A DNA stretch of 64,000 nt, taken from positions 124,001 through 188,000 of the forward strand of contig NW_025765173.1 in NCBI RefSeq assembly GCF_003918875.1, read 5' to 3'. Shown here one piece after another: positions 11,557 through 61,903 of this stretch. The DNA comes from Haliotis rubra. Taxonomy: Eukaryota. The notes under the pieces are model-generated. The model did no database searches. It saw only the letters and a list, made by a program, of their open reading frames with translations, and was not told the origin of the DNA. The position numbers and the translations under genes are program-made. The stretch's first letter is position 1, and each line of letters starts with the position of its first letter.

Positions 11557-11761
11557 ATGCCTCACTGGTCGGAAAAAGGACTCCGGTATCAGTCAGGTGT
11601 GATGATACAGGTGGCTGGACTCTGTGTGTACGTGATCGGATTCGGCAGCCCCGCCTGGACACAAATATACTCGCTGTATAGAGAGGACAGTGTCACGGAA
11701 TACCATGGGTTGTGGCAAATATGTGGACAGACAATATCTTCGTGCCAGTTGTTCAGCCACG
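11557..11761 (+). CDS. Claudin/PMP22-like four-TM gene A, exon 1 (TM1 and extracellular loop 1)
   Basis: MPHWSEKG, then TM1, PAW-x16-GLWQICGQTISSC (claudin W-GLW-C-C signature). Donor G|GTGAGT, phase 1. Confidence 0.9.
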
Positions 11762-12225
11762 GTGAGTGACAGCTGTCAAGTAAACATTGTTTCATTACTG
11801 TAATTAGGTGAACATTTGTGGTAAACAGATGGGCTTCACCTGGTTAATGATTTATACGCTTTGTGACGGTGAGTTGGGAAGTGACGTGATTAAACACGGG
11901 AAGGTTTTATTACAGGAATGAGACTCTGCATTCACTGCATGCGATAATATGTATTGTAGAGACATACGCCCTCAAGATATGTAATATGTGCACGGTGTCA
12001 TATGTGTGACTTTAATTGTTTTTATTATCTGATTTTCGTTCAAAAGGTACACTAATTATATAGTCGACAAAAAATCCTGTTATGTTTCTGATGGAATTAC
12101 TGCATGAAATATTTCTATTTTTAAAAACATGAAAATATGCAATATTAAATGTATAAGATGTTTTACATACACAAAAACCATATTCACCCTTCTCAAGTGT
12201 ACATGACCTAACACTAGAACTATTT

Positions 12226-12375
12226 GGGTGGTGGTTAGCCCATAGGGTAAAGCATTAGCTCCTTTAGTCGACGTCGCTGGTTCGATTCTTCATATTGTTA
12301 CAATGCGTGGAGCCCAATTCTAGTGGAATATTATTGGAATATTGCTAAAAGCGGCTTTAATTTGTTTAAACACTT
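12226..12375 (+). mobile_element. SINE family 1, degenerate
   Basis: GGTTCGATTC...GGAATATTGCTAAAAGCGGC. Confidence 0.7.
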
Positions 12376-12759
12376 GCTTATTAAAACTGTTAAATCTTAA
12401 CAATCACGTTACAATCCAATTCAGCTGCTGGAACAAAGAGCATGGAATAAACGTTGACCCTCTCCTGTGAAGTCCAGTGATATGATTGATACTTGTGTAA
12501 CTGACAGTTTGACTGTAGCAAAGATTTGCGAGCGACCTACTTTTAGTGCAGTTACATATCCCAGTGTTGTAACAAGTCTCCAGCTATATGCATATGCCTA
12601 TGGCCGTGTTTAACCAATATACTGAAATATATAACATGTATCTTTTAAATGTAATTTTGACGTATTTGTATGCGGCTTGTAGGTATTAAATTGTTATTGT
12701 CGACGTATATAGATGGCCGATGCAACCTAAATTTTCTCTCACCCACCCACAACTCACAG

Positions 12760-12760
12760 A

Positions 12761-12816
<56 letters not shown>

Positions 12817-12822
12817 GCACGC
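12760..12822. repeat. (GCAC)n microsatellite
   Basis: Direct reading. Confidence 0.95.
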
Positions 12823-14084
12823 TGACATCCTGTCTCCACCTCCCCGTCTCACGTGTCTATGATCCATTTTGCCTGGATAGGTGCGGTATGTTGTAAATCA
12901 GAATAAGTGTTCCGGCTGTGTATAGCATGAGTAATGAAACTAAGTTGAGTTACACCTGATGTTCCGACCAGCGAGGCATTATGTAGCTCTGTTCTAGGGT
13001 GGCCCCGTCGTCTACGGTGCTGACATTTGGGCTGTAGTGATGCCAGAAACGTTTAACGGCGGATTTGAAGCCCAATTTACCCTGATTGAATTTCCAGGTT
13101 CGTCAGCAACAGTTACAAAAGTAAATGTCTAATACCTGTCTTCCAGCATTAAGCTGATACGACGTGGTGTAACTGAAAAGTGAAACTGTTCAAAGAAGCG
13201 CGAAACCAAACTCACTCACTCATTCAACTATTTGCCTTCGCTTTCATCCCGCAATGATTTGATGAGTATTTGAACACATTAGAACTTTCACCACTCCCAC
13301 CACTATCATTTTTTGCGACCGGCTTTCTTGGAAAAAGCCCTTCTTTCAGAATGACGCGACTGATGACACATGCTAACATCTAGGTTAGGGTAAGGGTTAT
13401 CCCAGGTCATCTGATTGGCTGAAAAGATAAGCAGGAAGAGGTGGGGTGTCCCTTCAAATCTGCATTGTTGACCTAGCAGAGACATGGGGGCCTGCATTGG
13501 TGACGTCAGCCTGAAAGTGTGGCGACGAATTTTCAAATAATAGTCACGGCACTGAAGTCGACATTGTTTACCTGTACATGTTAATCCTTCTTAATTTGAG
13601 AGATGTACTTTCAAATACGTGAAGGGCTAAGCTTTATGTGATTAAAATGTCTTTGACAAACCCACTCCTTAATATACATATTACTATGAACGCAGTTATA
13701 AACGGTTGGTGTATCCAACTTTATATCAACGAAGATGGCGTCGATTTAAATCTAGATATTTTAAACCGATGTGTATTTTATTTTTATTTTTTTTAAACGT
13801 TGATCTAATGAGATACACAAGCTACGACTCAGATCATAATGCACGCCTTTCTTCACCATAACCGATAAATCGATTATGTTTCATGTGTATCATGAATTAT
13901 TCGTGACATGAGTGACGTTAATCGAACTCGATCAATGACGTGACGAGACTTATTACTCACCACCTCACAGCCTCTCAATGAGAGTATTATCATCTCCGCT
14001 GCTTGTGTTGGTCGCTACAGGTATATGTCCAACATATTCCTGATCAGTCTTTAAATCTGACTCACTGTTAATTGTGACAATTGA

Positions 14085-14136
14085 ACAACAGCAGAAGCAA
14101 CAGCAACAACAACAACAACAGCAACAACAACAACAA
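14085..14136. repeat. (CAA/CAG)n microsatellite
   Basis: Direct reading. Confidence 0.9.
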
Positions 14137-14651
14137 AATGTAAAGTATCTAATTTAAAACAGATATTACAACATCGGTTTCATTTGCTGCTGCTGCTGCT
14201 GCTATGCAGTTAATTTGACGAGACAGTCCCACGCTTTGTCTATGGAGGCGCCACGGCCTCCACCGGGCTTAAACGACGTAAAATACGTGAGTCACGGAAA
14301 AAGGGTTATGAAATTCCTTGGTTATTAATTAGGTCCATATACAATCTCGGACGTAACCATACCAATAAATCTGCTGATGTCCTTTTACATAAATCAAATG
14401 TAATCATTTGTCATTGAATTCTCTGTCCTTTCGACACTCATGTGATTGACAAGATTCAGGAAAACCGTGGACATGTCACGCAAATATGCGAACCTCGACA
14501 TGTCACGCTTGCAAGGTCACCCAATCACCCAATTGTCCGACTCCCCATTGTTCTTGGTGTCTCCGAAAACTCATTGGTGGACTGGACTAGGCAGTGCTTC
14601 CTGGGAGGTGTCCCATGCGCTGTCTGGGCAACGTAAAGGGGAAGGGCCCTG

Positions 14652-15131
14652 GGTGTCGTTGTACAAAGCGGTCTTAGCGCCAAGGTGACCGTAACTCCCA
14701 TACCTTTAACATGGACTTAAGGTAGCCTTAGCGATAAGGTGACCGTAACTCCCATACCTTAACATGGACTTAAGGTAGCCTTAGCGATAAGGTGACCGTA
14801 ACTCCCATACCTTAACATGGACTTAAGGTAGCCTTAGCGCTAAGGTGACCGTAACTCCCATACCTTAACATGGACTTAAGGTAGCCTTAGCGCTAAGGTG
14901 ACCGTAACTCCCATACCTTAACATGGACTTAGTGCTTAAGGAGCCGCTAAGGTGACCGTAACTCCCATACCTTAACATGGACTTAAGGTAGCCTTAGCGC
15001 TAAGGTGACCGTAACTCCCATACCTTAACATAGACTTAAGGTAGCCTTAGCGCTAAGGTGACCGCACCTCCCATACCTTAACATGGACTTAAGGTAGCCT
15101 TAGCGCTAAGGTTGTTTTGTACAGCAGCACC
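14652..15131. mobile_element. Related Harbinger-like MITE with internal 53-bp array (about 8 units), intron 1 of gene A
   Basis: Imperfect TIR GGTG..G.TGTACAAA.C...CTTAGCGC, CTG TSD. Unit is CGTAACTCCCATACCTTAACATGGACTTAAGGTAGCCTTAGCGCTAAGGTGAC. Confidence 0.78.
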
Positions 15132-15234
15132 CTGATCTCAGGATGAGCCTGACCAGCCTGTGCTAGGTTCACCGTGTGCCAGGATCACCGTGTACCAGTT
15201 ATTTCGGGAGGTCAGGGTTTAATTAACGCGGAGT

Positions 15235-16371: not shown

Positions 16372-16518
16372 GGGGCGGTGAAACCGTCCGCTCGTCACGC
16401 CGAAGGCCCGGGTTCGATTCCCCACATGAGTACAATGTGTGTACCTTTTCTGGTGTCCTACGCCGTGATATTGCTGGAATATTGCTAAAAGCGTCGTAAA
16501 ACCAACCTCACTCACTCA
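16372..16518 (+). mobile_element. SINE family 1
   Basis: Exact 12-bp TSD CCCAACGGCTCA. Confidence 0.9.
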
Positions 16519-18795: not shown

Positions 18796-18951
18796 AGGTG
18801 CATTCCTGGCACCAAGCTACTCGAGGTCTGACGACAATCAGTCTGATATTTGCTGTGATATCATTACTACTGCTGATACGATACAACTTCACCCAGTATG
18901 CACGGACTGCAGTGGACACGAGGTCCGTGAAGGCGCTGCCCACTCTTGCAG
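18796..18951 (+). CDS. Claudin-like gene A, exon 2 (TM2 and intracellular loop)
   Basis: Acceptor ATTTCAG|AG. Encodes EVHSWHQATRGLTTISLIFAVISLLLLIRYNFTQYARTAVDTRSVKALPTLA, including the claudin-typical W.QA.R motif before TM2. Donor G|GTAAAT. Confidence 0.88.
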
Positions 18952-21652: not shown

Positions 21653-22014
21653 GTATCACCGGGATCATCGGCTCCTCTATCTACGCAATACGGACACAGC
21701 TGCTGGTGTCTCGGAACAACGTTACTCTATCCTGGGGGTTCGCCCTGGCGGTGCTAGGGAACGCTATGATGATACTGAGTGCCTGTCTCCTGTCTTCCCG
21801 ACAGAGACGTCCACCCAACCCCCAGGCCAACAGGATGCGGACTTGGTCGACGGAGGTGAACCTGCCGTCTGGTGGCTCTGCGGGATTTGCCTACTTGGGA
21901 GGATCAGGAGGCCCGATGGTCAACCCAGCCTTTCAGGACGCTTCGTTCGTGAAACCACCCGACTTTGCTGACGCTCCTCCGAGTTATGAGGAAGCAATGA
22001 GGGGTACAGCATGA
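21653..22014 (+). CDS. Claudin-like gene A, exon 3 (TM3-TM4, tail with PPSY); spliced protein 240 aa
   Basis: Acceptor TTTTCCCCGAAG|GT. Encodes GITGIIGSSIY...LSWGFALAVLGNAMMILSACLL...DAPPSYEEAMRGTA*. SWGF is typical of the family's TM4 entry. Confidence 0.88.
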
Positions 22015-22550: not shown

Positions 22551-23289
22551 GGCATAGTGCCTGAAGTAGTTAATACGAACTGTTTATAAATTATTACATG
22601 TTATCCTTGAGGTAAGGTGTTATCATCAATAAATGTTCAGGGTGTAAAATTCGGTCATCATCTCCTCCAAAGACTTCTGTGGAGCAAGTGTAAGCTTTGT
22701 TTTTCACATCAACTGGGGTCAGAAGAGCTTGATGCATTCCATATTCACGTGATACATTCTATATTAATGTTTATACTGTAGAGTGGTTTTGGCGTTTGCA
22801 TAACTGCATATTATAGTGTGACATTAACACATGATTGACTTTAAAAATTGCAATATAATTATTACCTGTTTGTAACATGAAACCATATGCATTATTCAGG
22901 ATTCCTGCATAATATGCCATGCTTCAGGAGTGGTCAGGGAACGGTACAACACTGACTGAGCTTCAGGAACATCAGTGTCCACTGAAGTGTCTACCTCGAC
23001 ACTGTGCTGGGTGTAAATCAGGGGAACTCATTGTCCTTAGAGAACATTACTGCTAAAGCTGCAAGTGGTCATCTGTTAATCAGTAGTTATGACCTATGTT
23101 ACTCGAATCCTTTAACTAATGGAGATCAGGCAGTTAACGGGTTATGTTGTATGCGTCATATATGTAACATATTACACCAGCCATGTGGATTTAACAGACT
23201 CACGAATGTCAAAATAATACATATACTTTTAATACTGTTTCCTGTCGACAATTTAAATATATCAACATGACAACGGCGATCATTTCTGA

Positions 23290-24021: not shown

Positions 24022-26634
24022 AATATGTTAAAGCTGAGAACATATACATATATGTACAAACATCTATCTGTTGAATATGTTAAAGCTGAGAACATATACA
24101 TGTATGTACACACATCTATCTGTTGAATATGTTAAAGCTGAGATCATATACATGTATGTACACACATCTATCTGTTGAATATGTTAAAGCTGAGATCATA
24201 TACATGTATGTACATACATCTATCTGTTGAATATGTTAAAGCTGAGAACATATACATGTATGTACACACATCTATCTGTTGAATATGTTAAAGCTGAGAT
24301 CATATACATGTATGTGCACACATCTATCTGTTGAATATGTTAAAGCTGAGATCATATACATGTATGTACACACATCTATCTGTTGAATATGTTAAAGCTG
24401 AGAACATATACATGTATGTACACACATCTATCTGTTGAATATGTTAAAGCTGAGATCATATACATGTATGTACAAACATCTATCTGTTGAATATGTTAAA
24501 GCTGAGATCATATACATGTATGTACATACATCTATCTGTTGAATATGTTAAAGCTGAGAACATATACATGTATGTACACACATCTATCTGTTGAATATGT
24601 TAAAGCTGAGATGATATACATGTATGTACACACATCTATCTGTTGAATATGTTAAAGCTGAGAACATATACATGTATGTACACACATCTATCTGTTGAAT
24701 ATGTTAAAGCTGAGATCATATACATGTATGTACACACATCTATCTGTTGAATATGTTAAAGCTGAGATCATATACATGTATGTACATACATCTATCTGTT
24801 GAATATGTTAAAGCTGAGAACATATACATGTATGTACACACATCTATCTGTTGAATATGTTAAAGCTGAGATCATATACATGTATGTGCACACATCTATC
24901 TGTTGAATATGTTAAAGCTGAGATCATATACATGTATGTACACACATCTATCTGTTGAATATGTTAAAGCTGAGAACATATACATGTATGTACACACATC
25001 TATCTGTTGAATATGTTAAAGCTGAGATCATATACATGTATGTACAAACATCTATCTGTTGAATATGTTAAAGCTGAGATCATATACATGTATGTACATA
25101 CATCTATCTGTTGAATATGTTAAAGCTGAGAACATATACATGTATGTACACATCTATCTGTTGAATATGTTAAAGCTGAGATGATATACATGTATGTACA
25201 CACATCTATCTGTTGAATATGTTAAAGCTGAGGGAACATATACATGTATGTACACACATCTATCTGTTGAATATGTTAAAGCTGAGATGATATACATGTA
25301 TGTACACACATCTATCTGTTGAATATGTTAAAGCTGAGATCATATACATGTATGTACACACATCTATCTGTTGAATATGTTAAAGCTGAGAACATATACA
25401 TGTATGTACACACATCCATCTGTTGAATATGTTAAAGCTGAGATCATATACATGTATGTACACACATCTATCTGTTGAATGTGTTAAAGCTGAGATCATA
25501 TACATGTATGTACACACATCTATCTGTTGAATATGTTAAAGCTGAGATCATATACATGTATGTACACACATCTATCTGTTGAATATGTTAAAGCTGAGAA
25601 CATATACATGTATGTACACATCTATCTGTTGAATGTGTTAAAGCTGAGATCTATACATGTATGTACACAATATCTGTGAATAGTAAAAGCTGAGAACATA
25701 TACATGTATGTACACACATCTATCTGTTGAATATGTTAAAGCTGAGATCATATACATGTATGTACACACATCTATCTGTTGAATATGTTAAAGCTGAGAT
25801 CATATACATGTATGTACACACATCCATCTGTTGAATATGTTAAAGCTGAGATCATATACATGTATGTACACACATCTATCTGTTGAATGTGTTAAAGCTG
25901 AGATCATATACATGTATGTACACACATCTATCTGTTGAATATGTTAAAGCTGAGATCATATACATGTATGTACACACATCTATCTGTTGAATATGTTAAA
26001 GCTGAGAACATATACATGTATGTACACACATCTATCTGTTGAATGTGTTAAAGCTGAGATCATATACATGTATGTACACACATCTATCTGTTGAATATGT
26101 TAAAGCTGAGAACATATACATGTATGTACACACATCTATCTGTTGAATATGTTAAAGCTGAGATCATATACATGTATGTACACACATCTATCTGTTGAAT
26201 ATGTTAAAGCTGAGATCATATACATGTATGTACACACATCTATCTGTTGAATATGTTAAAGCTGAGATCATATACATGTATGTACATGTTAAAGCTGAGA
26301 TCATATACATGTATCTATCTGTTGAATATGTTAAAGCTGAGATGTATGACACATCTATCTGTTGAATATGTTAAAGCTGAGATCATATACATGTATGTAC
26401 ACACATCTATCTGTTGAATGTGTTAAAGCTGAGATCATATACATGTATGTACACACATCTATCTGTTGAATGTGTTAAAGCTGAGATCATATACATGTAT
26501 GTACACACATCTATCTGTTGAATGTGTTAAAGCTGAGATCATATACATGTATGTACACACATCTATCTGTTGAATATGTTAAAGCTGAGATCATATACAT
26601 GTATGTACACACATCTATCTGTTGAATGTGTTAA
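24022..26634. repeat. 52-bp satellite, about 50 copies
   Basis: Unit AATATGTTAAAGCTGAGATCATATACATGTATGTACACACATCTATCTGTTG. Confidence 0.97.
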
Positions 26635-27384: not shown

Positions 27385-27645
27385 TAATCCGGAGAGGTCA
27401 CTGGTTCGGTTACCAGCCACCATAAAATATGGTACGCGTGATTACCCTGACAGAGGACGACAATAACCGGTCAGCTCTGTGTGAGTGCGGTATCCTGTTA
27501 AACTGCGGCATGGTGACTCAGTGGAATAGCACTATAAAGCAGGGATACGTCCCGACTAGTACAAGCCGCTCTACCTACATACAGAGACGTGCATCATGTC
27601 AGTATATTCTCGAAGGCGACGTTAAACCTAACCTCACCTACCTTA
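27385..27645 (+). mobile_element. Old SINE of a third type (V-SINE-like)
   Basis: GGTTCG B-box remnant, AAAATATGGTAC, AGCACTATAAA, GACGTTAAACC end. Similar to 45340-45605. Confidence 0.45.
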
Positions 27646-31059: not shown

Positions 31060-33430
31060 TCAGTCTGTAACACACAGGCTCGCCCTTCACACACTGTCTG
31101 TAAGACACAGGCTCGCCCTTCACACACAGCCTGTAACACACAGGCTCTCCCTTTACACACAGTATGTAGCACACAGGCTCGCCCTTCACACACAGTATGA
31201 AACACACAGGCTCGCCCTTCACACACAGTCTGTAACTCTTAGCCTCTCCCTTCACACACAGCCTGTAACACACAAGCTCTGAATTCACACACAGTCTGTA
31301 ACACACAAGCTCTCCCTTCACACACAGTCTGTAACTCTTAGCCTCTCCCTTCACACACAGTCTGTAACTCTTAGCCTCTCCCTTCACACACAGTCTGTAA
31401 CACACAAGCTCTCCTTTCACACACAGTCTGTAACTCTTAGCCTCTCCCTTCACACACAGTCTGTAACACACAAGCTCTCCTTTCACACACAGTCTGTAAC
31501 TCTTAGCATCTCCCTTCACACACAGTCTGTAACACACAAGCTCTCCCTTCACACACAGTCTGTAACTCTTAGCCTCTCCCTTCACACGGTCTGTAACACA
31601 CAAGCTCTCCCTTCACACACAGTCTGTAACTCTTAGCCTCTCCCTTCACACACGGTCTGTAATTCTTAGCCTCTCCCTTCACACAGTCTGTAACACACAA
31701 GCTCTCCCTTCACACACAGTCTGTAACACACAAGCTCTCCCTTCACACACAGTATGTAACTCTTAGCATCTCCCTTCACACACAGTCGGTAACACACAAG
31801 CTCTCCCTTCACACACAGTCTGTAACTCTTAGCATCTCCCTTCACACAGTCTGTAACACAAAAGCTCTGAATTCACACACAGTCTGTAACACACAAGCTC
31901 TCCCTTCACACACAGACTGTAACTCTTAGCCTCTCCCTTCAGACACAATCTGTAACTCTTAGCCTCTCCCTTCACACACAGTCTGTAACACACAAGCTCT
32001 CCTTTCACACACAGTCTGTAACTCTTAGCCTCTCCCTTCACACACAGTCTGTAACACACAAGCTCTCCTTTCACACACAGTCTGTAACTCTTAGCATCTC
32101 CCTTCACACACAGTCTGTAACACACAAGCTCTCCCTTCACACACAGTCTGTAACTCTTAGCCTCTCCCTTCACACGGTCTGTAACACACAACACACACAG
32201 CTCTCCCTTCACACACAGTCTGTAACTCTTAGCTCTCCTTCACACAGTCTGTAATTCTTAGCCCTTCACTCACCTTCACACAGTCTCCCTTCACACACAT
32301 GTAAGCTCTCCCTTCACACACAGTCTGTAACACACAAGCTCTCCCTTCACACAGTCTGTAACTCTTAGCATCTCCCTTCACACACAGTCTGTAAACACAA
32401 AAGCTCTCCTTCACACACAGTCTGTAACTCTTAGCATCTCCCCTTCACACAGTCTGTAACACAAAGCTCTGAATTCACACACACATCTCTGTAACCTTAG
32501 CTCTCTCCCTTCACACACAGTCTGTAACACACAAGCTCTCCCTTCACACACAGTCTGTAACTCTTAGCCTCTCCCTTAACACACAGTCTGTAACACACAA
32601 GCTCTCCCTTCACACACAGTCTGTAACTCTTAGCCTCTCCCTTCACACAGTCTGTAACAGCACTCAAGCTCTCCTTCACACACACACAAGCTCTCCCTTC
32701 ACACACAGTCTGTAACTCTTAGCCTCTCCCTTTCACACACAGCCTGTAACACACAAGCTTCACACACTCTGTAATTCACACACAGTCTGTAACACACACA
32801 CACAGCTCTCCCTTCACACACAGTAACTCTTAGCTTCACACAGTGTAACACACAAGCTCTCCCTTCACATTCACACACAGTCTGTAACACAAAAGCTCTG
32901 AATTCACACACAGTCTGTAACACACAAGCTCTCTCAGACTGTAACTCTTAGCATCTCCCTTCAGACACACACGCACAAGCTCTCAATTCACACACTTCAC
33001 ACACACAGAGCCTGTAACACACAAGCTCTCAATTCACACACAGTCTGTAACACACAGGCTCTCCCTTCACACAGAGCCTGTAACACACAAGCTCTCAATT
33101 CACACACAGTCTGTAACACACAAGCTCTCCCTTCACACACAGTCTGTAGCACACAGGCTCTCCCTTCACACACAGTCTGTAACACACAGGCTCTCCCTTC
33201 ACACACAGCGTGTAACACACAAGCTCTCAATTCACAGACAGTCTGTACCACACAGGCTCTCCCCTTCACACAGTGTGTAACTCTTAGCCTCCCCCTTCAC
33301 ACACAGCCTGTAAGCTCGCCCGACAGAGACAGCGTGTAACACACAGGCTCTACCTTCACACACAGTCTGTAACACACAGGATCGCCCTTCATAGACAGTC
33401 TGTAACTCTTACCCTCTCCCTTCACACACA
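31060..33430. repeat. 33-bp satellite with two alternating variants
   Basis: CTTCACACACAGTCTGTAAC followed by ACACAAGCTCTCC or TCTTAGCCTCTCC. Confidence 0.95.
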
Positions 33431-33446: not shown

Positions 33447-34041
33447 CCCTTCGTCTCTCGATCACTGTTCACTGAAGCTGTGATGCTATATGTTCGTCTT
33501 CACTGTTCACTGAAGCTGTGATGCTATATTTTCGCCTTCACTGTTCACTAAAGCTGTGAAGCTATATTTTCGCCTTCATTGTTCACTGAAGCTGTGATGC
33601 TATATTTTCGCCTTCATTGTTCACTGAAGCTGTGATGCTATATTTTCGCCTTCATTGTTCACTGAAGCTGTGATGCTATATTTTCGCCTTCATTGTTCAC
33701 TGAAGCTGTGATGCTATATTTACGCCTTCATTGTTCACTGAAGCTGTGATGCTATATTTAAGCCTTCATCGTTAACTGAAGCTGTGATGCTATATTTTCG
33801 CCTTCACTGTTCACTGAAGCTGTGATGCTATATTTTCGTCTTCACTGTTCACTGAAGCTGTGATGCTATATTTTCGCCTTCACTGATCACTGAAGCTGTG
33901 ATGCTATATTTTCGCCTTCACTGTTCACTGAAGCTGTGATGCTATATTTTCGTCTTCACTGTTCACTGAAGCTGTGATGCTATATGTTCGCCTTCACTGT
34001 TCACTGAAGCTGTGATGCTATATTTTCGCCTTCACTGTTCA
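33447..34041. repeat. 38-bp satellite, about 15 copies
   Basis: TTCACTGTTCACTGAAGCTGTGATGCTATATTTTCGCC. Confidence 0.95.
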
Positions 34042-35454: not shown

Positions 35455-35619
35455 NNNNNNNNNNNNNNNNNNNNNNNNNNNNNNNNNNNNNNNNNNNNNN
35501 NNNNNNNNNNNNNNNNNNNNNNNNNNNNNNNNNNNNNNNNNNNNNNNNNNNNNNNNNNNNNNNNNNNNNNNNNNNNNNNNNNNNNNNNNNNNNNNNNNNN
35601 NNNNNNNNNNNNNNNNNNN
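35455..35619. other. Assembly gap
   Basis: N run. Confidence 1.
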
Positions 35620-37405: not shown

Positions 37406-37607
37406 ATGCCCCACTGGGAGACCAAGGGCAGGCTCTACCGTTCCGGTGTGGGGGTGATGGTTCTCGGGTTCCTGGGATATACCGTAGCTTTTGGAGTGCC
37501 TGCGTGGAGACGTGATGGTGACACGACTGTCCTGTCCTCTGGGCTGTGGCAGTACATGTGTGACGGTCTTCACAACTGCCAGACATACTCTGCTGTAGAA
37601 ACAGACA
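37406..37607 (+). CDS. Claudin-like gene B, exon 1
   Basis: MPHWETKG...FGVPAW-x11-GLWQYMCDGLHNC. Donor A|GTAAGT, phase 1. Confidence 0.9.
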
Positions 37608-39872: not shown

Positions 39873-40078
39873 NNNNNNNNNNNNNNNNNNNNNNNNNNNN
39901 NNNNNNNNNNNNNNNNNNNNNNNNNNNNNNNNNNNNNNNNNNNNNNNNNNNNNNNNNNNNNNNNNNNNNNNNNNNNNNNNNNNNNNNNNNNNNNNNNNNN
40001 NNNNNNNNNNNNNNNNNNNNNNNNNNNNNNNNNNNNNNNNNNNNNNNNNNNNNNNNNNNNNNNNNNNNNNNNNNNNNN
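39873..40078. other. Assembly gap in intron 1 of gene B
   Basis: N run. Confidence 1.
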
Positions 40079-42480: not shown

Positions 42481-42630
42481 CGTTGTTCCAGGTATCCCGA
42501 GTGCTGGCGTGCATCGCACTGGCTCTCTGTTTCATCGCCCTGTGTCTTATCTTCCTCCATAACTGCACGGCCTACTCGAAAAGTCTTCAGTCAGAAAATG
42601 CCTTCATCTCCATATTCCCTGTGTTTTGTG
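42481..42630 (+). CDS. Claudin-like gene B, exon 2 (150 nt)
   Basis: Acceptor TTCTCTTCCAG|CG. Encodes TLFQVSRVLACIALALCFIALCLIFLHNCTAYSKSLQSENAFISIFPVFC. Donor G|GTATGA. Confidence 0.9.
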
Positions 42631-44376: not shown

Positions 44377-44783
44377 GCCTTCTCGCCATGTCTTCATGTG
44401 TGGTTTACCTTGAACAAGGCATAAGTTCCATCTATTGGGGAGCCGTATTAGGATTTGCCGCCAGTGGTTGTACCATATTTGGAGGCATCTGCATGGGCGT
44501 AGGGTTGCACATTGACAGGCTTAAAGCGGCGAGCACTCAACAAACGTCAAGTACAGTCCAGAACCAGACTGCTTTCAACCAAGACATTACGACAATGGCA
44601 ATTCCAGTGAACGTCATTCCCTCAAATGGGGCTCAGACAAATATGCCAATGGTTTCAATGGCCTCGAATACAAACACAGACTGTACCGGATCCTCGGATC
44701 AACAGCTTGCAACACAAGTCGATCAACAAGCGAGACTAAATCCATCTGCACCACCGCCCGACCCTGACTTCTTATACTACTGA
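44377..44783 (+). CDS. Claudin-like gene B, exon 3 (tail with PSAP); spliced protein 252 aa
   Basis: Acceptor TTTTCAATTCCAG|GC. Encodes GLLAMSSCVVYL...IYWGAVLGFAASGCTIFGGICMGVGLHIDR...LNPSAPPPDPDFLYY*. Confidence 0.88.
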
Positions 44784-46319: not shown

Positions 46320-49300
46320 ACTCCAATCAATACTGTCACTTCCATTGCGCCAACTGTTACTCATGTTGTTCCAATTGTAAGTACTTTTGCTCCAGCTGTT
46401 ACTGCTCCAACTGTAACCATATACTGTTTCTCCAGCTGTTACAGCTATTGCACCAACTGTAACGATATACTATTTCTCCAGCTGTTACAACTATTTCCCC
46501 AGCTGTTGCATTGCTCCAACTGTAACCATATACTATTTCTCCAGCTGTTACAGCTATTGCTCCAACTGTAACCATATACTATTTCTCCAGCTGTTACAGC
46601 TATTGCTCCAACTGTAACCATATACTATTTCTCCAGCTGTTACAGCTATTGCTCCAACTGTAACCATATACTATTTCTCCAGCTGTTAGTGCTACTGCTC
46701 CAACTGTAACCATATACTATTTCTCCAGCTGTTACTGCTACTGCTCCAACTGTTACTAATGTCTCTTTTGCTATCGATACTTTCTCTCCTATAGTTACTA
46801 CCGTTGCCCAAACTTCAACTGTTCCAACTGTTTCTCCTACTGTTACTACCATTGCTCTAACTGTTACCACTATCTCTCCTTCCGTTACTACTATTGTTAC
46901 CCAACTGTTACTGCTGTTTCTCTTGCCATTACTATCATTGCTCTAACTGTTACCACTATCTCTCCTTCCGTTACTACTATTGTTACCCAACTGTTACTGC
47001 TGTTTCTCTTACCGTTACTATTATTGCTCCAACTGTTACCACTATCTCTCCTTCCGTTACTACTATTGTTACCCAACTGTTACTGCTGTTTCTCTTGCCG
47101 TTACTATCATTGTTCCAACTGTTACCACTATTTCTCCTTCTGTTACTACTATTGTTACCCAACTGCTCTAACTGTTTCTCCTTCCGTTACTATCATTGCT
47201 CCAACTGTTACCACTATTTCTCGTTCCGTTACTACTATTGTTACCCAACTGTCACTGCTGTTTCTCTTGCCGTTACTATCATTGCTCCAACTGTTACCAC
47301 TATCTCTCCTCCCGTTCCTACTATTGTTACCCAGCTGTTACTTCTGTTTCTCCTTCCGTTACTATTATTGCTCCAACTGTTACCACTATCTCTCCTCCCG
47401 TTACTACTATTGTTACCCAACTGCTCCAACTGTTTGTCCTTCCGTTACTATCATTGCTCCAACTGTTACCACTATTTCTCCTCCCGTTACTACTATTGTT
47501 ACCCAGCTGTTACTGCTGTTTCTCTTACCGTTACTATTATTGCTCCAACTGTTACCACTATCTCTCCTTCCGTTACTACTATTGTTACCCAACTGTTACT
47601 GCTGTTTCTCTTGCCGTTACTATCATTGCTCAGACTGTTACCACTATTTCTCCTTCCGTTACTACTATTGTTACCCAACTGTTACTGCTGTTTCTCTGGC
47701 CGTTACTATCATTGCTCCAACTGTTACCACTATCTCTCCTCCCGTTACTACTATTGTTACCCAACTGTTCCTGCTGTTTCTCTTTCCGTTACTATCATTG
47801 TTCAGACTGTTACCACTATTTCTCTCTTCCGTTACTACTTATTGTTATCTAACTGTTACTGCTGTTTCTCCTGGCCGTTACTACTATTCCTCATAACTGT
47901 TACCCACTTTCTTCTCCTTCCGTTACTCGTTACAATTTTTGCTCCAACTGCTAACAACTATTTTCTTCCGTTACTACTATTGTTACCAACTACACTGCTT
48001 TTTCTCTTGCCGTTACTATCATTGCTCAGACTGTTACCACTATTTCTCCTTCCGTTATTACTATTGTTACCCAACTGTTACTGCTGTTTCTCTTGCCGTT
48101 ACTATCATTGCTCCAACTGTTACCACTATTTCTCCTCCCGTTACTACTATTGTTACCCAACTGTTACTGCTGTTTCTCTTGCCGTTACTATCATTGCTCA
48201 GACTGTTACCACTATTTCTCCTTCCGTTACTACTATTGTTACCCAACTGTTACTGCTGTTTCTCTGGCCGTTACTTATTATTGCTCCAACTGTTACCACT
48301 ATTTCTCCTCCTGTTACTACTATTGTTACTCAACTGTTACCGTTGTTTTTCTCTTGCTGTTACTTATCATTGCTCAGACTGTTACCACTATTTCTCCTTC
48401 CGTTACTACTACTATTGTTACCCAACTGCTTGTTGCTGTTTCTCTGTGTTTCACTTATTAGTTGCTGCTCCAACTGTTAGCTTGCTTCACTATCTACTCC
48501 TTGTTACTACACTATCTTTTACCGTTAACTATTAAGCTTCAACTGTTCTCTTCCGTTATCCGCTTCTTACTATTGTTACCCAACTGTTAGCCATTCTTTG
48601 TTACTATCATTGTTCAGACTGTTACCACTATTTCTCCTTCCTGTTACTACTTATTGTTACCCAACCTGTTACAGCTGTTTCTCTTGCTGTTACTTCATTG
48701 TCTTAACTGTTACCACTATTTCTCCTCCCGTTACTACTATTGTTACCCAGCTGTTACTGCTGTTTCTCTTACCGTTACTATTATTGCTCCAACTGTTACC
48801 ACTATCTCTCCTTCCGTTACTACTATTGTTACCCAACTGCTCCAACTGTTTCTCCTTCCGTTACTATTATTGCTCCAACTGTTACCACTATCTCTCCTTC
48901 CGTTACTACTATTGTTACCCAACTGCTCCAACTGTTTCTCCTTCCGTTACTATTATTGCTCCAACTGTTACCACTATTTCTCCTCCCGTTACTACTATTG
49001 TTACCCAACTGTTACTGCTGTTTCTCTCTACTGTTACTTATTATTGTCTTAACTGTTACCTTCTCTATCTCTCCTTCCGTTACTACTATTGTTACCCAAC
49101 TGCTCCAACTGTTTCTCTTTCCGTTACTACCATTGCTCCAACTGTTACCACTGTCTCTCCTCCCGTTACTACTATTGTTACCCAACCGATTCTGCTGTTT
49201 CTCTTCCGTTACTACTATTGTTACCCAACTGTTACTGCTTTTTCTCTTGCCGTTACTATCATTGCTCAGACTGTTACCACTATTTCTCCTCCCGTTACTA

Positions 49301-49910
49301 CTATTGTTACCCAACTGTTACTGCTGTTTCTCTTGCCGTTACTATCATTGCTCCAACTGTTACCACTATTTCTCCTCCCGTTACTACTATTGTTACCCAA
49401 CTGCTCCAACTGTTTCTCTTACCGTTACTATTATTGCTCCAACTGTTACCACTATCTCTCCTTCCGTTACTACTATTGTTACCCAACTGCTCCAACTGTT
49501 TCTCTTGCCGTTACTACCTTTGTCTCCAACTGTTACCACTGTCTCTCCTCCCGTTACTACTATTGTTACCCAACTGATACTGCTGTTTCTCTTACCGTTA
49601 CTACCATTACTTCAACTGTTACCACTATCTCTCCTCCCGTTACTACTTTTGTTACCCAACTGCTCCAACTGTTTCTCCTTCCGTTACTATCATTGCTCTA
49701 AGTGTTACCACTGTCTCTCCTCCCGTTACTACTATTGTTACCCAACTGTTACTGCTGTCTCTCCTCCCGTTACTACTATTGTTACCCAACTGCTCCAACT
49801 GTTTCTCTTGCTGTTACTACCATTGCTCCAACTGTTACCACTATCTCTCCTTCCGTTATTACTATTGTTACCCAACTGATACTTCTGTTTCTCCTACTGT
49901 TACTATTTGC
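46320..49910. repeat. Compound satellite built on a 21-bp monomer (46-bp and 86-bp higher-order units)
   Basis: 46-bp unit at about 46400-46745; 86-bp unit (21+23+21+21) at about 46855-49900. Confidence 0.95.
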
Positions 49911-51323: not shown

Positions 51324-51540
51324 ATGCCACACTGGCGAGAAAAGTGCCACACGTACCATCTTGGGACTGTATGCACGACCCTGGGTTGTCTCGGGTATCT
51401 CATAACGTTTAGTGTACCCACGTGGAAACAGACTTACTTATACCACACCGTCGACTCCCAACAGAGGATGTACACCACGTCTGGCCTCTGGCTTCAGTGC
51501 GTCGGATGGACAAGATGCAAACCATTCGTCACGGGGGACA
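51324..51540 (+). CDS. Claudin-like gene C, exon 1
   Basis: MPHWREKC...FSVPTW-x19-GLWLQCVGWTRC. Donor A|GTAAGT, phase 1. The longer ORF in the track reads into the intron. Confidence 0.9.
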
Positions 51541-52171: not shown

Positions 52172-55065
52172 ATGTTGATAACAAACCTATTCTGTATAAA
52201 TGTTGGTATAACAAGGGAGTTATGTTTGTATCTGACATGTTGACAGCAGAAGGGAAATTTCTATCCTTTGATGACTTTATATATCTATATAAACTCAGAA
52301 CAAATTTCCTGACCTTTGAAAGGGTCAAACAAGCAATTATTACTTATATGTTAAATGTAAATATTTCAGATTTTTCTCTGAGCATTAAACCGACATACCC
52401 TTTTAATTTGTCCAAACTAAAATTCAGTGAAAAAGGTAGAAAATATTTCTATGAAACACTCCTATGCTCTTAATTTAAAACAGAACTCTATAATAGAAAC
52501 TGGGATAGCTTGAATCTAAATCTCCTACCAAAGGAGTGGGAAATATTTAATATTATCCCATGGAAGTGCACCTATAGCACTGCTCTAAGATGGTTACAAT
52601 ACAGAATTATCCATAATATTCTACCTACAAAACAGTTTTTGTTTAAGATCAAGTACACAGACTCTCCCATTTGCAGTTTCTGTAAATATAACATTGAATC
52701 AATTACCCATCTATTTTGGGACTGTGAAATTGTTCAAGATATCTGGAAAAACCTCCAGTCATGGCTCTTAACTGGCTTGAATATTCCGTTATATTTCACA
52801 AAACATAATGTTTTACTTGAAATTAAAGGAAAAAATAATAATCCAATTAATGCCATAATACTTGTTGTGAAGCAAGTTATCTTTAGACACAGCAGAATTC
52901 AACTGTACCCTTTATCAGTCATGTGAAAAGGGAGATAATTGATGTATTACGACATTACAAAATATGTTTATTCCTCCTCTTGTGGTGTTGACAAATTCTT
53001 CTCCTTTTGGCCATCTCTACATGCACTCTTCCAGCACTATGAGGAGAGGGATGAATAATTTTGACTATGTTACATACATACATCAATACATCAATGCATT
53101 AATACATACATTAATACATACATCAATACATTAATACATACATTAATACATACATTAATGCATTAATACATACATTAATACATACATTAATACATACACT
53201 AATACATACATTAATGCATACATTAATATATACATTAATACATTAATACATACATTAACAATACATACATTAATATATACATTAATACATACATTAATGC
53301 ATACATTAATACATACATCAATACATACAACAATACATACATAATACATACATACATCCATACATACATTAATACATACATTAATACATACATTAATACA
53401 TTAATACATTAATACATACATTAATACATACATTAATATATACAATAATACATACATCAATACATTAATACATACATTAATACATACATTAATATATACA
53501 ATAATACATACATCAATACATTAATACATACATTAATACATACATTAATACATATACATTAATACATACATTAATACATACATAATAATACATTAATGCA
53601 TTACATTACATAAATACATTAATACATTGCATATATACATACATTAATACATACATTAATACATACATTAATACATACATCAATACATTAATACATACAT
53701 TAATACATACATTAATACATATACATACATTAATACATACATTAATACATACATTAATACATACATTAATACATTAATACATACATTAATACATACATTA
53801 ATATACATTAATACATACATTAATACATACATACATTACATTAATACATTAATACATTAATACATTAATACATACATTAATACATACATTAATACATACA
53901 TTAATGCATACATTAATATATACATTAATACATTAATACATACATTAATACATACATTAATACATACATTAATACATACATTAATGCATACATTAATACA
54001 TACATTAATACATACATTAATGCATTAATACATACATGAATACATACATCAATACATCAATGTATTAATACATACATTAATACATTAATACATACATTAA
54101 TACATACATTAATACATACATTAATACATACATTAATACATACATTAATACATACATTAATACATTATGCATACAATACATACATACATAATACATACAT
54201 TAATGCATACATATATTAATATATACATACATACATACATTAATACATACATTAATACATACATTAATACATACATACATTAATACATTAATACATACAT
54301 TAATAATACATACATTAATATATACATCAATACATTAATACATACATTAATACATATACATACATTACATACATAATACATACATCAATACATTAATACA
54401 TACATTAATACATACATTACATAATACATACATTAATACATACATACAAATACATACATTAATACATATTAATACATACATAATACATACATTATACATT
54501 AATACATACATAATACATTAATACATATTAAATACATTACATACATACATTAATATATACAATTACATACATACATTAATACATACATTAATACATACAT
54601 TAATACATAATAATACATACATTAATACATACATTCATACATACATACATCAATACATTAATGCATACATTAATACATACATTAATAATACATACATTAA
54701 TACATACATTAATACATTAATACATACACATTAATACATACATTAATACATTAATAATACATGCATGCATTAATACATACATTAATACATACATACATTA
54801 ATACATACATTAATGCATACATTAATACATACATTATAACACACACATACATTAATGCATACATATACATATGCGCACGCACGCACACTATGAAGATATG
54901 GTGTATCTGATGGGATTTGCAGACGTTTTTCTATAGAAATATCATTGATTGCTTCTGTATTCTTGTATGTCAGTACAATTGAACCTATCAATGTCATATA
55001 TTGACTTCATGTACTGAACCTATAAACAAGTGAAAAAATGGTAAATAAAAAAATCACCAAAAAAC
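52172..55065 (+). mobile_element. 5'-truncated L1/Tx1-type LINE (ORF2 C-terminal zinc-finger region plus 3' UTR) in intron 1 of gene C
   Basis: Interrupted ORF with WLQYRIIHNILPTK..LFKIK..DSPICSFC....ESITHLFWDC (zf-RVT-like). AATAAA and an A-rich end near 55044-55064. Exact 11-bp direct repeat ATCTTTCATAT at 52161-52171 and 55066-55076. Confidence 0.85.
53070..54885. repeat. Expanded compound microsatellite (TACA/TACATTAA) inside the LINE 3' UTR
   Basis: About 1.8 kb of ATACATACATTA-type units. Confidence 0.95.
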
Positions 55066-55574: not shown

Positions 55575-55724
55575 CTATGTTTCAGAGTGTGAGGTTTGTG
55601 GCTATCATGGCGCTCACATTCTCCATCCTTACAGTCTACATCATCTTCCTACACAACTGTACAACATACTCTAAACGACTGCAGTCAGAAAATGCCGTCA
55701 TCTCCGTCTTCCCTATTTTCCCAG
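55575..55724 (+). CDS. Claudin-like gene C, exon 2 (150 nt)
   Basis: Acceptor CTGTTTTCAG|CT. Encodes TMFQSVRFVAIMALTFSILTVYIIFLHNCTTYSKRLQSENAVISVFPIFP. Donor G|GTAACA. Confidence 0.9.
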
Positions 55725-55854: not shown

Positions 55855-56081
55855 GCCTTCTGTCAATAGCATCGTGTGTACTGTTTCTGGCAAGTCAAGG
55901 AACTGTCACGGCTTCGTGGGCCGTGTCTTTAACATTTATCAGTGGTGCGTTATGCATTGGCGGAGGAATGATCATGTTTCTTGGTCTCCATTTCGATAGA
56001 TGCAGAGCTTCGAGAACTATCAGCGTTAACCACGGTGTAATTGAACTTCATGTGATGGCCCACCTGTCTGTATCTGGCTAA
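55855..56081 (+). CDS. Claudin-like gene C, exon 3 (short tail); spliced protein 197 aa
   Basis: Not in the ORF track. Acceptor TTGTTCTTTCAG|GC. Manual translation GLLSIASCVLFLASQGTVTASWAVSLTFISGALCIGGGMIMFLGLHFDRCRASRTISVNHGVIELHVMAHLSVSG* aligns with gene B exon 3 (GLL..SCV..L, W, GG....GLH.DR). Confidence 0.85.
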
Positions 56082-56453: not shown

Positions 56454-56721
56454 NNNNNNNNNNNNNNNNNNNNNNNNNNNNNNNNNNNNNNNNNNNNNNN
56501 NNNNNNNNNNNNNNNNNNNNNNNNNNNNNNNNNNNNNNNNNNNNNNNNNNNNNNNNNNNNNNNNNNNNNNNNNNNNNNNNNNNNNNNNNNNNNNNNNNNN
56601 NNNNNNNNNNNNNNNNNNNNNNNNNNNNNNNNNNNNNNNNNNNNNNNNNNNNNNNNNNNNNNNNNNNNNNNNNNNNNNNNNNNNNNNNNNNNNNNNNNNN
56701 NNNNNNNNNNNNNNNNNNNNN
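56454..56721. other. Assembly gap
   Basis: N run. Confidence 1.
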
Positions 56722-58403: not shown

Positions 58404-58641
58404 ATGCCTCACTGGGTAGACAAGTGCCGGACATACCGTCTAGGTGTAGTGTGCACCGTCCTGGGATTTCTCGGATATGTCCTGGCATTCAGCCTGCCCT
58501 CCTGGAGCCACGTGTTGGTATATTTTGGCGATATAGACACTGTACAGTATGATCAAGGGGAGTATGTGAATGGAGGGCTATGGCTGCACTCGTGTGAAGG
58601 GTTGTCCAACTGCCAACCATTTAACGTTACACAGCAGACAG
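58404..58641 (+). CDS. Claudin-like gene D, exon 1
   Basis: MPHWVDKC...FSLPSW-x23-GLWLHSCEGLSNC. Donor G|GTGAGT, phase 1. Confidence 0.9.
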
Positions 58642-59150
58642 GTGAGTCGGAATGGATGATGTCACAACTACTCTGTGAATATAGCAAATGTACGTGCACT
58701 GACGTTTGAATAATGAATCAGTTGTATATTTTATCAAATATCACAGAATACTTTCATTCAATGTTTTTATTCTTGGCAAACAGTGAAGGTGTAGTATGCC
58801 TGTTTCTTCTAACAATGCGTTATGTATGGGCAATATTTTCCAACTCTTAGGGTTTTATTTCCATACTGCATATCAGCTATTAAATAGGACTGAATTGAGT
58901 TAATATAATTATTTAGACACAAAAAAAGCACAAATTACAGAAAGGAACTTAGAAAGGTCGGTCTTAACGAGTTCATTCAGTTATAAGGTACCATATTTTA
59001 GGTAAGGGGGGTAATTTGATATTTTGTTGGGATTATCAGTTTACACCATAACATCAACTCACAACGAGATAGCAAGTGATATATAAAAGGTAATGTAGTA
59101 ATTATTAACAAGGTGACAGCTTGATTGTCAAAAGGACAAGTGACACAAAT

Positions 59151-59236
59151 CACCAGAAATGGGCTTCACACATTGTACCCATGTTTGGAATCGAACTCGA
59201 GCGAACGCTTTAACCACTTGGCTACCCACCGCCCTC
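59151..59236 (-). mobile_element. SINE family 1, partial
   Basis: Matches the family head. Confidence 0.75.
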
Positions 59237-60879
59237 ATGTCGGAACAGCAACGTGCTTCATTGTCATATATATTTCAGAAAACAATTTCTCACCTTTTGT
59301 GACAATAGAGAGAGAGAGAGTTGGGTTTGTGGACATAGTGTTTTGTTATAATTACATTAACAGAAGAATGATGCTCTTATATTTCAATGACATATAGAAG
59401 TTATTCTACTGTACAGTTTACCTTCAGATTTGAAAACAAACCTTTAATATGCATCCTGTATGTAATTTAAGTCAGGCTGATGATTTGCCCCACCCCACCT
59501 GTCTCCCCACCCCATCCACCCTAGCAGAATTTGTGTTTGGAAATAACGTCATTCTATAACCATTCTGTATCCATAAGAATATCCGGCCCCTTTCACCATT
59601 ACAATTTAGGGATCCCTCACACAACAGTAATTCTAAATGATTTACCGTTCGTTACCAGGAAGCTTTATCAGATTTTAGCCATGCAGGTGATATATGTACA
59701 CTCAGGTCACCCAGAGACGTATTATCAGATAAGAGACACACGTGGCTGTGTTGCTTAACCACGAAACTATGGTATACTTTTTCACATTGAGAACATGGAC
59801 ATACTTACTCTTTTCACGAACACTCCGTGTCATCTCTTGATTTTCAGTGATCCATGCATACCTTTCACCGCTATTTTGCCTGTTGTACCCATTTAATCTG
59901 TGACTAAATATTCTGAATATATATTTAACTATTGTGTCAATATATAAGTCTGGCAAGACCGATGTTTGACGTACACTCAAACAAAGAACAAATTAGATTA
60001 TGTGACTAAATAATTGAATGTTTTCTACATCATGGTACAAATCGACGAGTATATAGATATCCTGTTTGTATGTCTGGTTCACATGTGCCGAGATAACGTC
60101 CTCCCTACCTAATGTCATTTACGGTATGGAGGTCAGCCTGACCCGTCAGAATCAATACAGCCCAGTAGGATACTGAAGTACTGTCGAGGATATGTCACAC
60201 ATGCAGTGCACTGCTAAGAGTGTATCTAATGGATACATTGGTCCTACGTTATCGCATGTTACGTACTGACACTATAGAACTATAAGGTATAATACACTGT
60301 AAACCATTCGAAGTTTAAACATTATTTACAACTAAACACCCCAATTTTAGTTTTGAAATTTTAAAGAATTAAAATAAAATATTGAAGCATCAGATGACTA
60401 CTATCAGATTGATAAATATGAAATACAGAATAGTCTTTTCTAAATTCTTAAAGGACAAATAGTTTTGGAATACTTGACTGTTTTACTATCAATTACAATG
60501 TTTTTCAATATCTCTTTCTCTTTAACGATCGACATATAAAATTCAGAATGTAACACCATAAGAAAGAGACATTGAACAATATTTGTGTTTGCTGTGAGCA
60601 ATGGAAGTGGCAATGTAGACAAGTTGTGAATGTTCTGTTAATGACCTCTTTTGCTGAAAGTCGAAAAAGTCAAGTGTGAAGCCCATTTCACCAGTCTCCG
60701 GTATCTGCCGAAACACATGTATGTTGTGTGTTAATGACCTCTTTTCCTGAAAGTAAAAGTGCGCAGTGGTGCGCTGTGCCCTTTGTTCTGAAAGTTTATT
60801 ACTTAAAAGTTGACCATTGAAACTCTCGTGAAAACGGATGGGAATGAACTGTCAACTGTTTCTATTAATTGGACGGTGT

Positions 60880-61262
60880 TGAGTGTATTTTCTCGTAATT
60901 GAAATTTTTGTCTCGTTTTTTACATTATTTTCTCGTTGCCTCGAATATTTTCTCGTTGCTTCAGGTTTCTTTCAATAATCTGAAATTTCGAGCATTTACT
61001 CGTTGCTTCGAGTATTTTCTCGTCCCTTCAATTGATTTCTCCTTGCTTCGATTAATCTCTCGTTGCTTCAGGTTTCTGTCAATAGCTTGAAATTTCGAGC
61101 ATTTACTCGTTGCTTCGAGTCTTTTCTCGTCCCTTCAAGTGATTTCTCGTTTCTTCAATTAATTTGAATTAATTCGTTGCTTCAAGTTTCTTTCAAAAAC
61201 TTAAAATTTCAAGTTTTTGAAGGATACTTGAAGTAACGAGAAAATACTAGAAGCAACGAGTG
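60880..61262. repeat. Repeat block of TCGTTGCTTC sub-repeats with a ~107-bp duplication and inverted copies at the right end (probable DNA-transposon relic)
   Basis: Direct and inverted (GAAGCAACGAG) copies are visible. Confidence 0.6.
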
Positions 61263-61753
61263 CGTTCGCTGAAAAACTATTTTATGCTACAGACGTGTCA
61301 GCATTAGGGTTTCACACGATCAATCCTGTACAATGGACGTTGACCTAGGACGTAAAGAACAAGCTCAATCGTCGTCTGAGCACAATGAATCACAGACCTT
61401 GAAACGTCAAACGTAATATGTTCGCTGCATGCTAACTTCTGCCAGTTCCTCGCATGCCAAAACAATAGCCCTTCCAACATAAAAAATAAACCTTTTTTTA
61501 TAAAAAAGATATAAATCAGGACTGAAAACTAACACCTGCAATCATTCTGATATGTTTTGGTGATACTTTTCACAGATATTAACGTTCTTACAAAGGATGT
61601 TTGTTGTAAACATTTATAGTTTTAATATTTTGTACTAAAGCATATATTTCATTTTCCCCTATGTGTTATGAGCATAGTTGTGCAAACTGCAATATGGAAG
61701 ACCATCGTTTCTTCTACTGTGATATATATGACAAACGATCTTGATTGTTTCAG

Positions 61754-61903
61754 TCCTGTTTCACTCAGTGCGATCTTTGGCCAGTGCAACTCTCCTGTTG
61801 TTTGTTATATCGCTGGTCCTTATACCAATATACAACTTCACCGGCTACTCCAGATGGCTACAGAAGGAACCTGTACTTGTCTCAATATTTCCTCTTGTCT
61901 CAG
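61754..61903 (+). CDS. Claudin-like gene D, exon 2 (150 nt); exon 3 not in window
   Basis: Acceptor TTGTTTCAG|TC. Encodes VLFHSVRSLASATLLLFVISLVLIPIYNFTGYSRWLQKEPVLVSIFPLVS. Donor G|GTAAGC. Confidence 0.88.

Follow-up and report, generated by a model that had tools for sequence, protein, structure and literature searches.

A conserved abalone cluster of four probable claudin-superfamily genes

Claudin genes often occur in tandem pairs or arrays. The classic claudins (PF00822; structures of claudins -3, -4, -9, -15, -18, and -19) have four transmembrane (TM) helices, and the signature in their first extracellular loop (loop 1), W(x>8)GLWxxC(x8-10)C, is a trait of the superfamily as a whole (PMC3879130). 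In claudin-15, the stretch between beta1 and beta2 has been described as differing greatly from claudin to claudin and proposed as a trans-interaction site (PMC6028499). Drosophila Sinuous, Megatrachea, and Kune-kune and Caenorhabditis elegans CLC-1 to -4, VAB-9, and NSY-4 are divergent pfam00822 members that keep the loop-1 signature and often lack PDZ ligands, and such invertebrate claudin-like proteins have roles at septate or adherens junctions, among others (PMC3879130, PMC2172325). Here we describe four tandem genes, designated A to D, in a 64,000-nucleotide stretch of the genome of the blacklip abalone Haliotis rubra ("the window"; GCA_003918875.1, QXJH01001252.1, a record of 239,104 bp in which window position 1 is position 124001). 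We consider it likely that they form a conserved abalone cluster of four functional paralogs belonging to the claudin/PMP22/EMP/MP20 superfamily (Pfam PF00822 and PF13903), with a claudin fold and a putative junctional role. Molluscs have septate junctions, not tight junctions, so that the cellular setting differs from that of the classic claudins, and the septate-junction and barrier proteins of molluscs have received hardly any molecular study.

The word MPHW occurs four times in the six-frame translation of the window, always on the forward strand (11557, 37406, 51324, and 58404), against a chance expectation of about 0.06 for a four-residue word of its codon degeneracy over 128,000 codon positions, with uniform codons assumed. 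Each occurrence begins a gene with three coding exons and two phase-1 introns. The features are listed below; the variable segment is the stretch between P-x-W and GLW, and L002 is a locus fetched from the same H. rubra record that reaches to the right of the window.

11557..11761, forward strand: A exon 1, donor ACG/GTGAGT, phase 1
11659..11706, forward strand: A variable segment, 16 amino acids, charge -2, modelled as a beta1-beta2 hairpin
18796..18951, forward strand: A exon 2, 156 nt, TM2, cytoplasmic YNFT-x-Y motif, and start of TM3
21653..22014, forward strand: A exon 3, remainder of TM3, a loop 2 that contains an NVT sequon, TM4, and tail with PPSY, to the stop codon
37406..37607, forward strand: B exon 1, donor ACA/GTAAGT, phase 1
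37508..37540, forward strand: B variable segment, 11 amino acids, charge 0, with 4 of 11 residues different in H. asinina
42481..42630, forward strand: B exon 2, 150 nt
44377..44783, forward strand: B exon 3, end of TM3, short loop 2, TM4, and long tail ending FLYY, to the stop codon
51324..51540, forward strand: C exon 1, donor GACA/GTAAGT, phase 1
51426..51482, forward strand: C variable segment, 19 amino acids, charge +1
55575..55724, forward strand: C exon 2, 150 nt
55855..56081, forward strand: C exon 3, after a 130-nt intron, with a short tail, to the stop codon
58404..58641, forward strand: D exon 1, donor CAG/GTGAGT, phase 1
58506..58574, forward strand: D variable segment, 23 amino acids, charge -4
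61754..61903, forward strand: D exon 2, 150 nt, followed by an intron 2 that leaves the window
L002 18527-18957 (window-equivalent 66930-67360), outside the window: D exon 3

The MPHW exons span 202-238 nt, and all end at a phase-1 GT donor; the second exons are all preceded by AG and followed by GT, with phase 1 on both sides. Exon 1 encodes the N terminus, TM1, and loop 1; exon 2 encodes TM2, a short cytoplasmic loop, and the beginning of TM3; and exon 3 completes TM3 and adds a short loop 2, TM4, and a tail on the cytoplasmic side. The summed exon lengths are 240 codons for A, 252 for B, 197 for C (591 nt), and 272 for D. The original prediction, made from the window sequence, had described four same-strand MPHW paralogs with phase-1 introns and second exons of 156, 150, 150, and 150 nt, and translation and splice sites bear this out; both of the exons that it described for each gene are correct, but it missed the third. 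When the interval from exon 1 to the exon carrying the HNCT motif was searched for an additional exon, none was found, the predicted second exon being the HNCT exon itself, and a search for D exon 3 within 61904-64000 likewise found none, that exon lying beyond the window. Residues M1, P2, H3, W4, K7, Y11, and G14, P32-x-W34, GLW, and one cysteine are invariant in A to D, in agreement with the motifs MPHW-x2-K-x3-Y-x2-G, P-x-W, and GLW that had been noted in all four genes, and the motif [HY]N[CF]T-x-Y is present in four of four second exons. The lengths predicted for the variable segment and its differing charge were also correct, and the statement that it has no shared sequence was slightly overstated, as C and D share a few aligned residues.

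The four genes correspond to RefSeq LOC124266391 (A), LOC124266392 (B), LOC124266398 (C), and LOC124266399 (D), each named "uncharacterized protein." Translated, the exons agree without a mismatch with the corresponding parts of the H. rubra RefSeq proteins (P0004, P0001, P0023, and P0005 for A to D, respectively, in our protein set), and in a protein search the open frame containing the last exon of B retrieved the 252-amino-acid product of LOC124266392, with 100% identity over the aligned part. A literature search for the four LOC identifiers found no paper citing them in the library covered, in keeping with their having been called uncharacterized, and one for mollusc claudin-like proteins with Lottia returned nothing. 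Whole-protein analyses were run on the database proteins, and our own gene models were searched exon by exon.

The cluster is conserved within Haliotis. In Haliotis asinina (CM074530.1, 63,578,523-63,637,205), the array A, B, C, D recurs with order and orientation unchanged, with a BIR-domain gene to the left of the array on the opposite strand. In the Haliotis rufescens locus, as far as it was fetched (JALGQA010000020.1), a BIR gene is followed by A, B, and, about 8.9 kb further on, exon 1 of C; candidate matches to C exons 2 and 3 in this locus were dropped because they proved to be the exons of B. The window has the same BIR exon at 3875-4900 on the reverse strand, an open frame of 341 amino acids in which BIR (inhibitor of apoptosis) domains score 90.6 bits. 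All three species have a BIR gene to the left of A, showing that synteny extends past the array. The orthologs, available from two or three species per gene, keep all start codons, reading frames, and GT/AG sites.

Membership of the superfamily is most easily recognized in A, which scored 36.4 bits against Pfam PMP22_Claudin (cut-off, 26.7), its orthologs scoring 38.0 and 40.1 bits, and which reached 29.0 bits against Claudin_2 (cut-off, 29.1). Among related gastropod proteins, P0010 (Gigantopelta) and P0015 pass Claudin_2 and P0012 passes PMP22_Claudin. Exon-by-exon Pfam scans gave only sub-threshold matches to Claudin_2, Clc-like, and PMP22_Claudin, single exons being too short. Profile comparisons extended the assignment to the other paralogs. 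A 13-sequence family profile matched the solved structures of claudin-18 (6.5e-10), TARP gamma-2 (2.4e-8), and claudin-19 (4e-8), as well as claudins -9, -3, and -15 and LIM2 (the last at 4.6e-4). A profile built from B, C, D, and their orthologs matched only claudins in the PDB (claudin-9 at 2e-5, claudin-19 at 1.5e-4, and claudin-18 at 1.9e-3), and hhalign aligned B/C/D with A and the Pfam-positive gastropod relatives across the four-TM core with a probability of 99.6% and an E value of 5.7e-25. The loop-1 signature itself is present in four of four paralogs, as W34, 11-23 residues, GLW, 2-3 residues, Cys, 5-6 residues, and Cys.

Structure prediction agrees with these results. The AlphaFold model of A, which is of moderate confidence (predicted local distance difference test score [pLDDT], 71; predicted template modeling score [pTM], 0.61), has four long helices (residues 9-30, 72-100, 111-139, and 148-168), with loop 1 forming three to four strands and loop 2 a single one, and in a Foldseek search of the PDB its best matches were claudins -3, -4, and -19, with target template modeling scores (TM-scores) of 0.74-0.79 and root mean square deviations (rmsd) of 3.1-3.4 Å; TARPs came next, with higher rmsd. 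The model of D has helices at 2-30, 79-108, 119-147, and 151 onwards and matched claudin-19 with a target TM-score of 0.71. Hydropathy agrees, and from the fold match both ends of the protein are predicted to be cytoplasmic. As in the classic claudins, the abalone proteins combine four TM helices and the W...GLW..C..C pattern with a predicted extracellular beta-sheet on the helix bundle and a variable beta1-beta2 segment, and it is classic claudins that give the best profile and fold matches in the PDB. The original prediction had called the four proteins claudin-like, and, as judged from Pfam, profiles, and modelled fold, that reading holds at the superfamily level.

Several observations weigh against it. 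B scored 17.9 bits against PMP22_Claudin, under the cut-off, and C and D had no Pfam match at all, leaving A as the only paralog to pass a gathering score. The two loop-1 cysteines are separated by 5-6 residues and not by the 8-10 of the published consensus (PMC3879130), B, C, and D have a very short loop 2, and a PDZ-binding C terminus of the -YV type is found in none of the four proteins, which end in RGTA (A), FLYY (B), SVSG (C), and ADQH (D). Confidence in the model of D is low (pLDDT, 61), especially at the hairpin tip, and this model has no fifth strand. The splice junctions are those indicated by conservation and by the RefSeq models. Finally, claudins and TARP/gamma subunits score about equally by profile and by fold, so that neither the subfamily nor a junctional function is fixed by these scores.

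The last point bears on the possibility that the proteins are auxiliary ion-channel or receptor subunits of the TARP/stargazin or calcium-channel gamma type and not junctional proteins at all. TARPs, calcium-channel gamma subunits, and GSG1L share the fold and superfamily of the abalone proteins; the 13-sequence profile matched TARP gamma-2 and gamma-8 (2.4e-8 to 1e-6), TARPs were retrieved in both fold searches with target TM-scores of 0.60-0.78, and an arginine-rich stretch directly after TM4 of D, together with the long tails of A, B, and D, is presumably a loose reminder of TARP tails. However, the TARP/gamma/GSG1L proteins have a longer loop 1 than the abalone proteins, in which it has only 32-45 residues and is claudin-like. 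They were not matched by the B/C/D profile, most TARPs superimposed on the model of A with an rmsd of 5-7 Å, compared with 3.1-3.5 Å for claudins, and a C terminus of the TTPV type is present in none of the four paralogs. We therefore regard an auxiliary-subunit role as improbable and retain a claudin-like, junctional role as the better reading. Clc-like, Claudin_2, and Claudin_3 scores were weak, placing the abalone proteins in none of these subgroups. PMP22, EMP, and LIM2 (MP20) belong to the Pfam family matched by A, and in the PMP22 gene the last two coding exons divide the protein at comparable positions, ahead of TM2 and inside TM3; the tails of PMP22, EMP, and LIM2 are very short, whereas those of abalone A, B, and D have 70-100 residues. 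Compared by description, the invertebrate claudin-like proteins are most likely the functional analogue of the abalone proteins.

The segment that differs among the paralogs maps, in the models, to the beta1-beta2 hairpin, the variable tip of the claudin extracellular domain, with strands at residues 35-41 and 44-50 in the model of A and 32-41 and 48-57 in that of D. Variability at this position is known across claudins, so that the differences between A, B, C, and D are a normal family trait and not a peculiarity of the locus. The motif [HY]N[CF]T-x-Y, which the original prediction had placed in the extracellular loop, occupies residues 98-103 of A and would lie at the cytoplasmic end of TM2 (model helix 72-100), making it unlikely that its N-x-T is glycosylated. 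By analogy with the family, the four proteins would be located in the lateral membranes of epithelia, with septate junctions as the most plausible site (PMC3879130, PMC2172325, PMC6028499), where the extracellular sheet would make side-by-side and cell-to-cell contacts and the paralog-specific hairpin, with its 11-23 residues and charge of +1 to -4, may set partner or permeability specificity. The proline-rich tails, with PPSY in A and PAPY in D, could bind WW-domain proteins, which would take the part that PDZ partners play for classic claudins.

The original prediction had further proposed that this is a diversifying family with a hypervariable loop 1. We compared the ratio of nonsynonymous to synonymous substitution rates (dN/dS) in the loop with that in the core, using the Nei-Gojobori method exon by exon on complete codons, for H. 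rubra versus H. asinina and versus H. rufescens. Whole-gene dN/dS was 0.15-0.17 for A, 0.31-0.38 for B, and 0.17 for D; for C it was 0.20 against H. asinina and, for exon 1 only, 0.08 against H. rufescens. Values pooled over genes were as follows.

Variable segment: 0.40 in both species comparisons
N terminus and TM1: 0.06-0.34
Conserved part of loop 1: 0.06-0.15
Exon 2: 0.16
TM3-TM4: 0.26-0.29
Tails: 0.26-0.33

These values bear on the alternative that the genes encode a lineage-specific surface-recognition family, acting in immunity, pathogen contact, or self/non-self discrimination, in which diversifying selection has made loop 1 hypervariable. The hairpin does evolve faster than the core (0.40 versus 0.06-0.34), and replacement changes were relatively commoner in the loop than in the core (Fisher P = 0.09 for H. 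asinina and P = 0.028 for H. rufescens). Hairpin length and charge vary among paralogs, the loop of B carries a 3-amino-acid insertion in H. rufescens, the MPHW type was found in Haliotis alone, and viruses and toxins are known to target claudin loops (PMC3879130). Against this, the pooled loop dN/dS is well under 1 in both species comparisons, and the loops are conserved gene by gene: those of A and D are identical between H. rubra and H. asinina at 15 of 16 and 20 of 23 residues, respectively, charge is nearly unchanged within each orthologous set (-5 for D in H. asinina), and loop length changes only in B of H. rufescens. The species agree in copy number and in gene order, the sole extra copy being a pseudogene (see below), and in claudins it is normal for this segment to vary from paralog to paralog (PMC6028499). 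With orthologous loops conserved and a dN/dS of about 0.40, the inference of diversification is unsupported, and we think a surface-recognition family improbable. The data fit a set of old paralogs, each with a loop individually conserved under somewhat relaxed constraint, and do not fit ongoing diversification; this is a real but fairly ordinary gene family under ordinary purifying selection and not a hypervariable recognition system. Site tests on three species have little power, and episodic selection would be compatible with these values.

B evolves about twice as fast as its neighbors, and in its TM3-loop 2-TM4 block (44377-44520) 12 replacement and 4 silent changes separate it from H. 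asinina (dN/dS, 0.89); with three species, relaxed constraint and adaptive change cannot be told apart here. Where exon 1 of A, B, and C begins, over its first 34 codons (11557-11658, 37406-37507, and 51324-51425), silent divergence from H. rufescens amounts to 41 differences per 102 codons, compared with 25.5 per 100 in exon 2, a difference that may be noise.

A maximum-likelihood tree grouped B, C, and D with support of 100/99 and placed A on a separate lineage, showing that A is the conservative member and that B, C, and D form a divergent sister group; deeper nodes, which involve long branches (a 203-amino-acid H. asinina paralog and proteins of Gigantopelta, Lymnaea, and Littorina), were unresolved. 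The H. asinina paralog is a solitary gene at about 56.96 Mb on CM074530.1, 6.6 Mb from the array (positions 10001-14037 of the fetched locus L008). It has the same three-exon layout, with codons split at the same two points, and scored 27.6 bits against PMP22_Claudin, implying that the gene architecture is older than the array. In a representative protein library, exon 1 had four matches below 1e-10, namely three named Haliotis proteins and an unnamed read-assembly fragment (P0006) nearly identical to exon 1 of H. rufescens B, and matches in other gastropods were at 1e-7 and weaker. A word-indexed search with the 13-sequence alignment returned five proteins, all from Haliotis, a result that says little about wider distribution. 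The family had been called lineage-specific, which is true only in part: the MPHW type was observed in Haliotis alone, but Gigantopelta, Lymnaea, and Littorina have clearly related proteins that share the N-terminal and loop-1 pattern. One-to-one orthology was shown within Haliotis only, and not more widely among Bilateria.

A more speculative reading is that the B/C/D clade, so far observed in Haliotis alone, is a neofunctionalized claudin-fold set, in which the hairpins would act as a small adhesion or permeability code for particular epithelia or as contact points for pathogens or toxins, under episodic positive selection that is hinted at by the fast evolution of B and is too weak to be seen with three species. 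We regard this as rather unlikely, if somewhat less so than the two alternatives considered above. What is new here is that three proteins missed by Pfam (B, C, and D) are placed in the claudin superfamily; the gene models themselves are already in RefSeq, unnamed. This is a modest gain for abalone annotation and provides candidates for studies of epithelial barriers in an aquaculture species. It does not reveal a system of a new kind; for claudins, paralogs that lie in tandem and vary in the first loop are the norm.

It had been suggested that the array may extend to the right, and a further copy does exist there, but only in decayed form. Outside the window, L002 21294-27090 (window-equivalent about 69697-75493) is a colinear duplicate of the D region, with 80-84% nucleotide identity, in which the sequence upstream of D, exons 1 and 2, and parts of the introns are represented. 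In the copy, exon 1 lacks a GT donor, contains an in-frame stop codon, and has lost 19, 3, 11, and 3 nt in four deletions, and exon 2 is open with a small internal duplication. In H. asinina, positions 22706-23067 of the fetched locus L004 contain a fragment resembling D exon 3 with stop codons and a frameshift. This points to a fifth copy that was a pseudogene before H. rubra and H. asinina split, although different exons survive in the two remnants. In neither species is a further gene called in the 10 kb on the right-hand side of D. In L002, an open reading frame (ORF) for a Tc1/mariner-type transposase follows the D duplicate, beginning at position 27531.

The presence of this clear pseudogene next to the array raises the question of whether A alone is functional, with B, C, and D being relaxed, decaying duplicates. 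The lack of any Pfam match above cut-off for these three proteins and the high dN/dS of the TM3-TM4 block of B point in the same direction. The pseudogene itself, however, shows what decay looks like at this locus, with its frame-breaking deletions, stop codons, and lost donor, whereas B, C, and D have kept their frames, start codons, and splice sites in each of the two or three species available, their whole-gene dN/dS is 0.17-0.38, and 43 columns are invariant across the three proteins and their orthologs. Decay of B, C, and D is accordingly very improbable, the least credible of the alternatives considered here, and four functional paralogs remain the preferred reading.

Runs of N interrupt the window at three places, none of which touches a coding exon.

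35455-35619: between A and B
39873-40078: within intron 1 of B
56454-56721: between C and D

On both sides of each run, the flanking 300 nt are identical to the loci fetched from the same public record and share one constant offset with them, so the public record is continuous across the N runs with spacing unchanged. The three-exon structure of B, the gene with a run in its first intron in the window, is the same in H. asinina and H. rufescens. The run at 56454-56721 is N in the window, but L002 contains no N run at all, and this interval may be masked and not a true gap.

The original prediction had described intact exons in the face of a heavy transposon load. The exons are indeed intact; a large transposon load as the main feature of the introns was rejected, as the window contains only two degraded transposon ORF fragments, and the repeats are mostly minisatellites, whose arrays make up about one-fifth of the window, and short dispersed repeats, which total about 4.2 kb. 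Scans of the window for Rfam families and tRNA genes found none. The repeat features are listed below.

24022-26634: minisatellite, 52 bp x 50
31061-33430: minisatellite, 33 bp x 72
33462-34041: minisatellite, 38 bp x 15
46816-49907: minisatellite, 86/172 bp x 17
53074-54836: minisatellite, 12 bp x 149
52510-52926, forward strand: degraded ORF fragment matching zf-RVT (reverse-transcriptase zinc-binding region), in intron 1 of C
62658-63005, reverse strand: degraded ORF fragment matching DDE_3 (Tc1/mariner-type), in intron 2 of D

The minisatellite arrays account for strong GC/AT strand skews and for the stop-free "ORFs" in multiple frames at 46894-49879.

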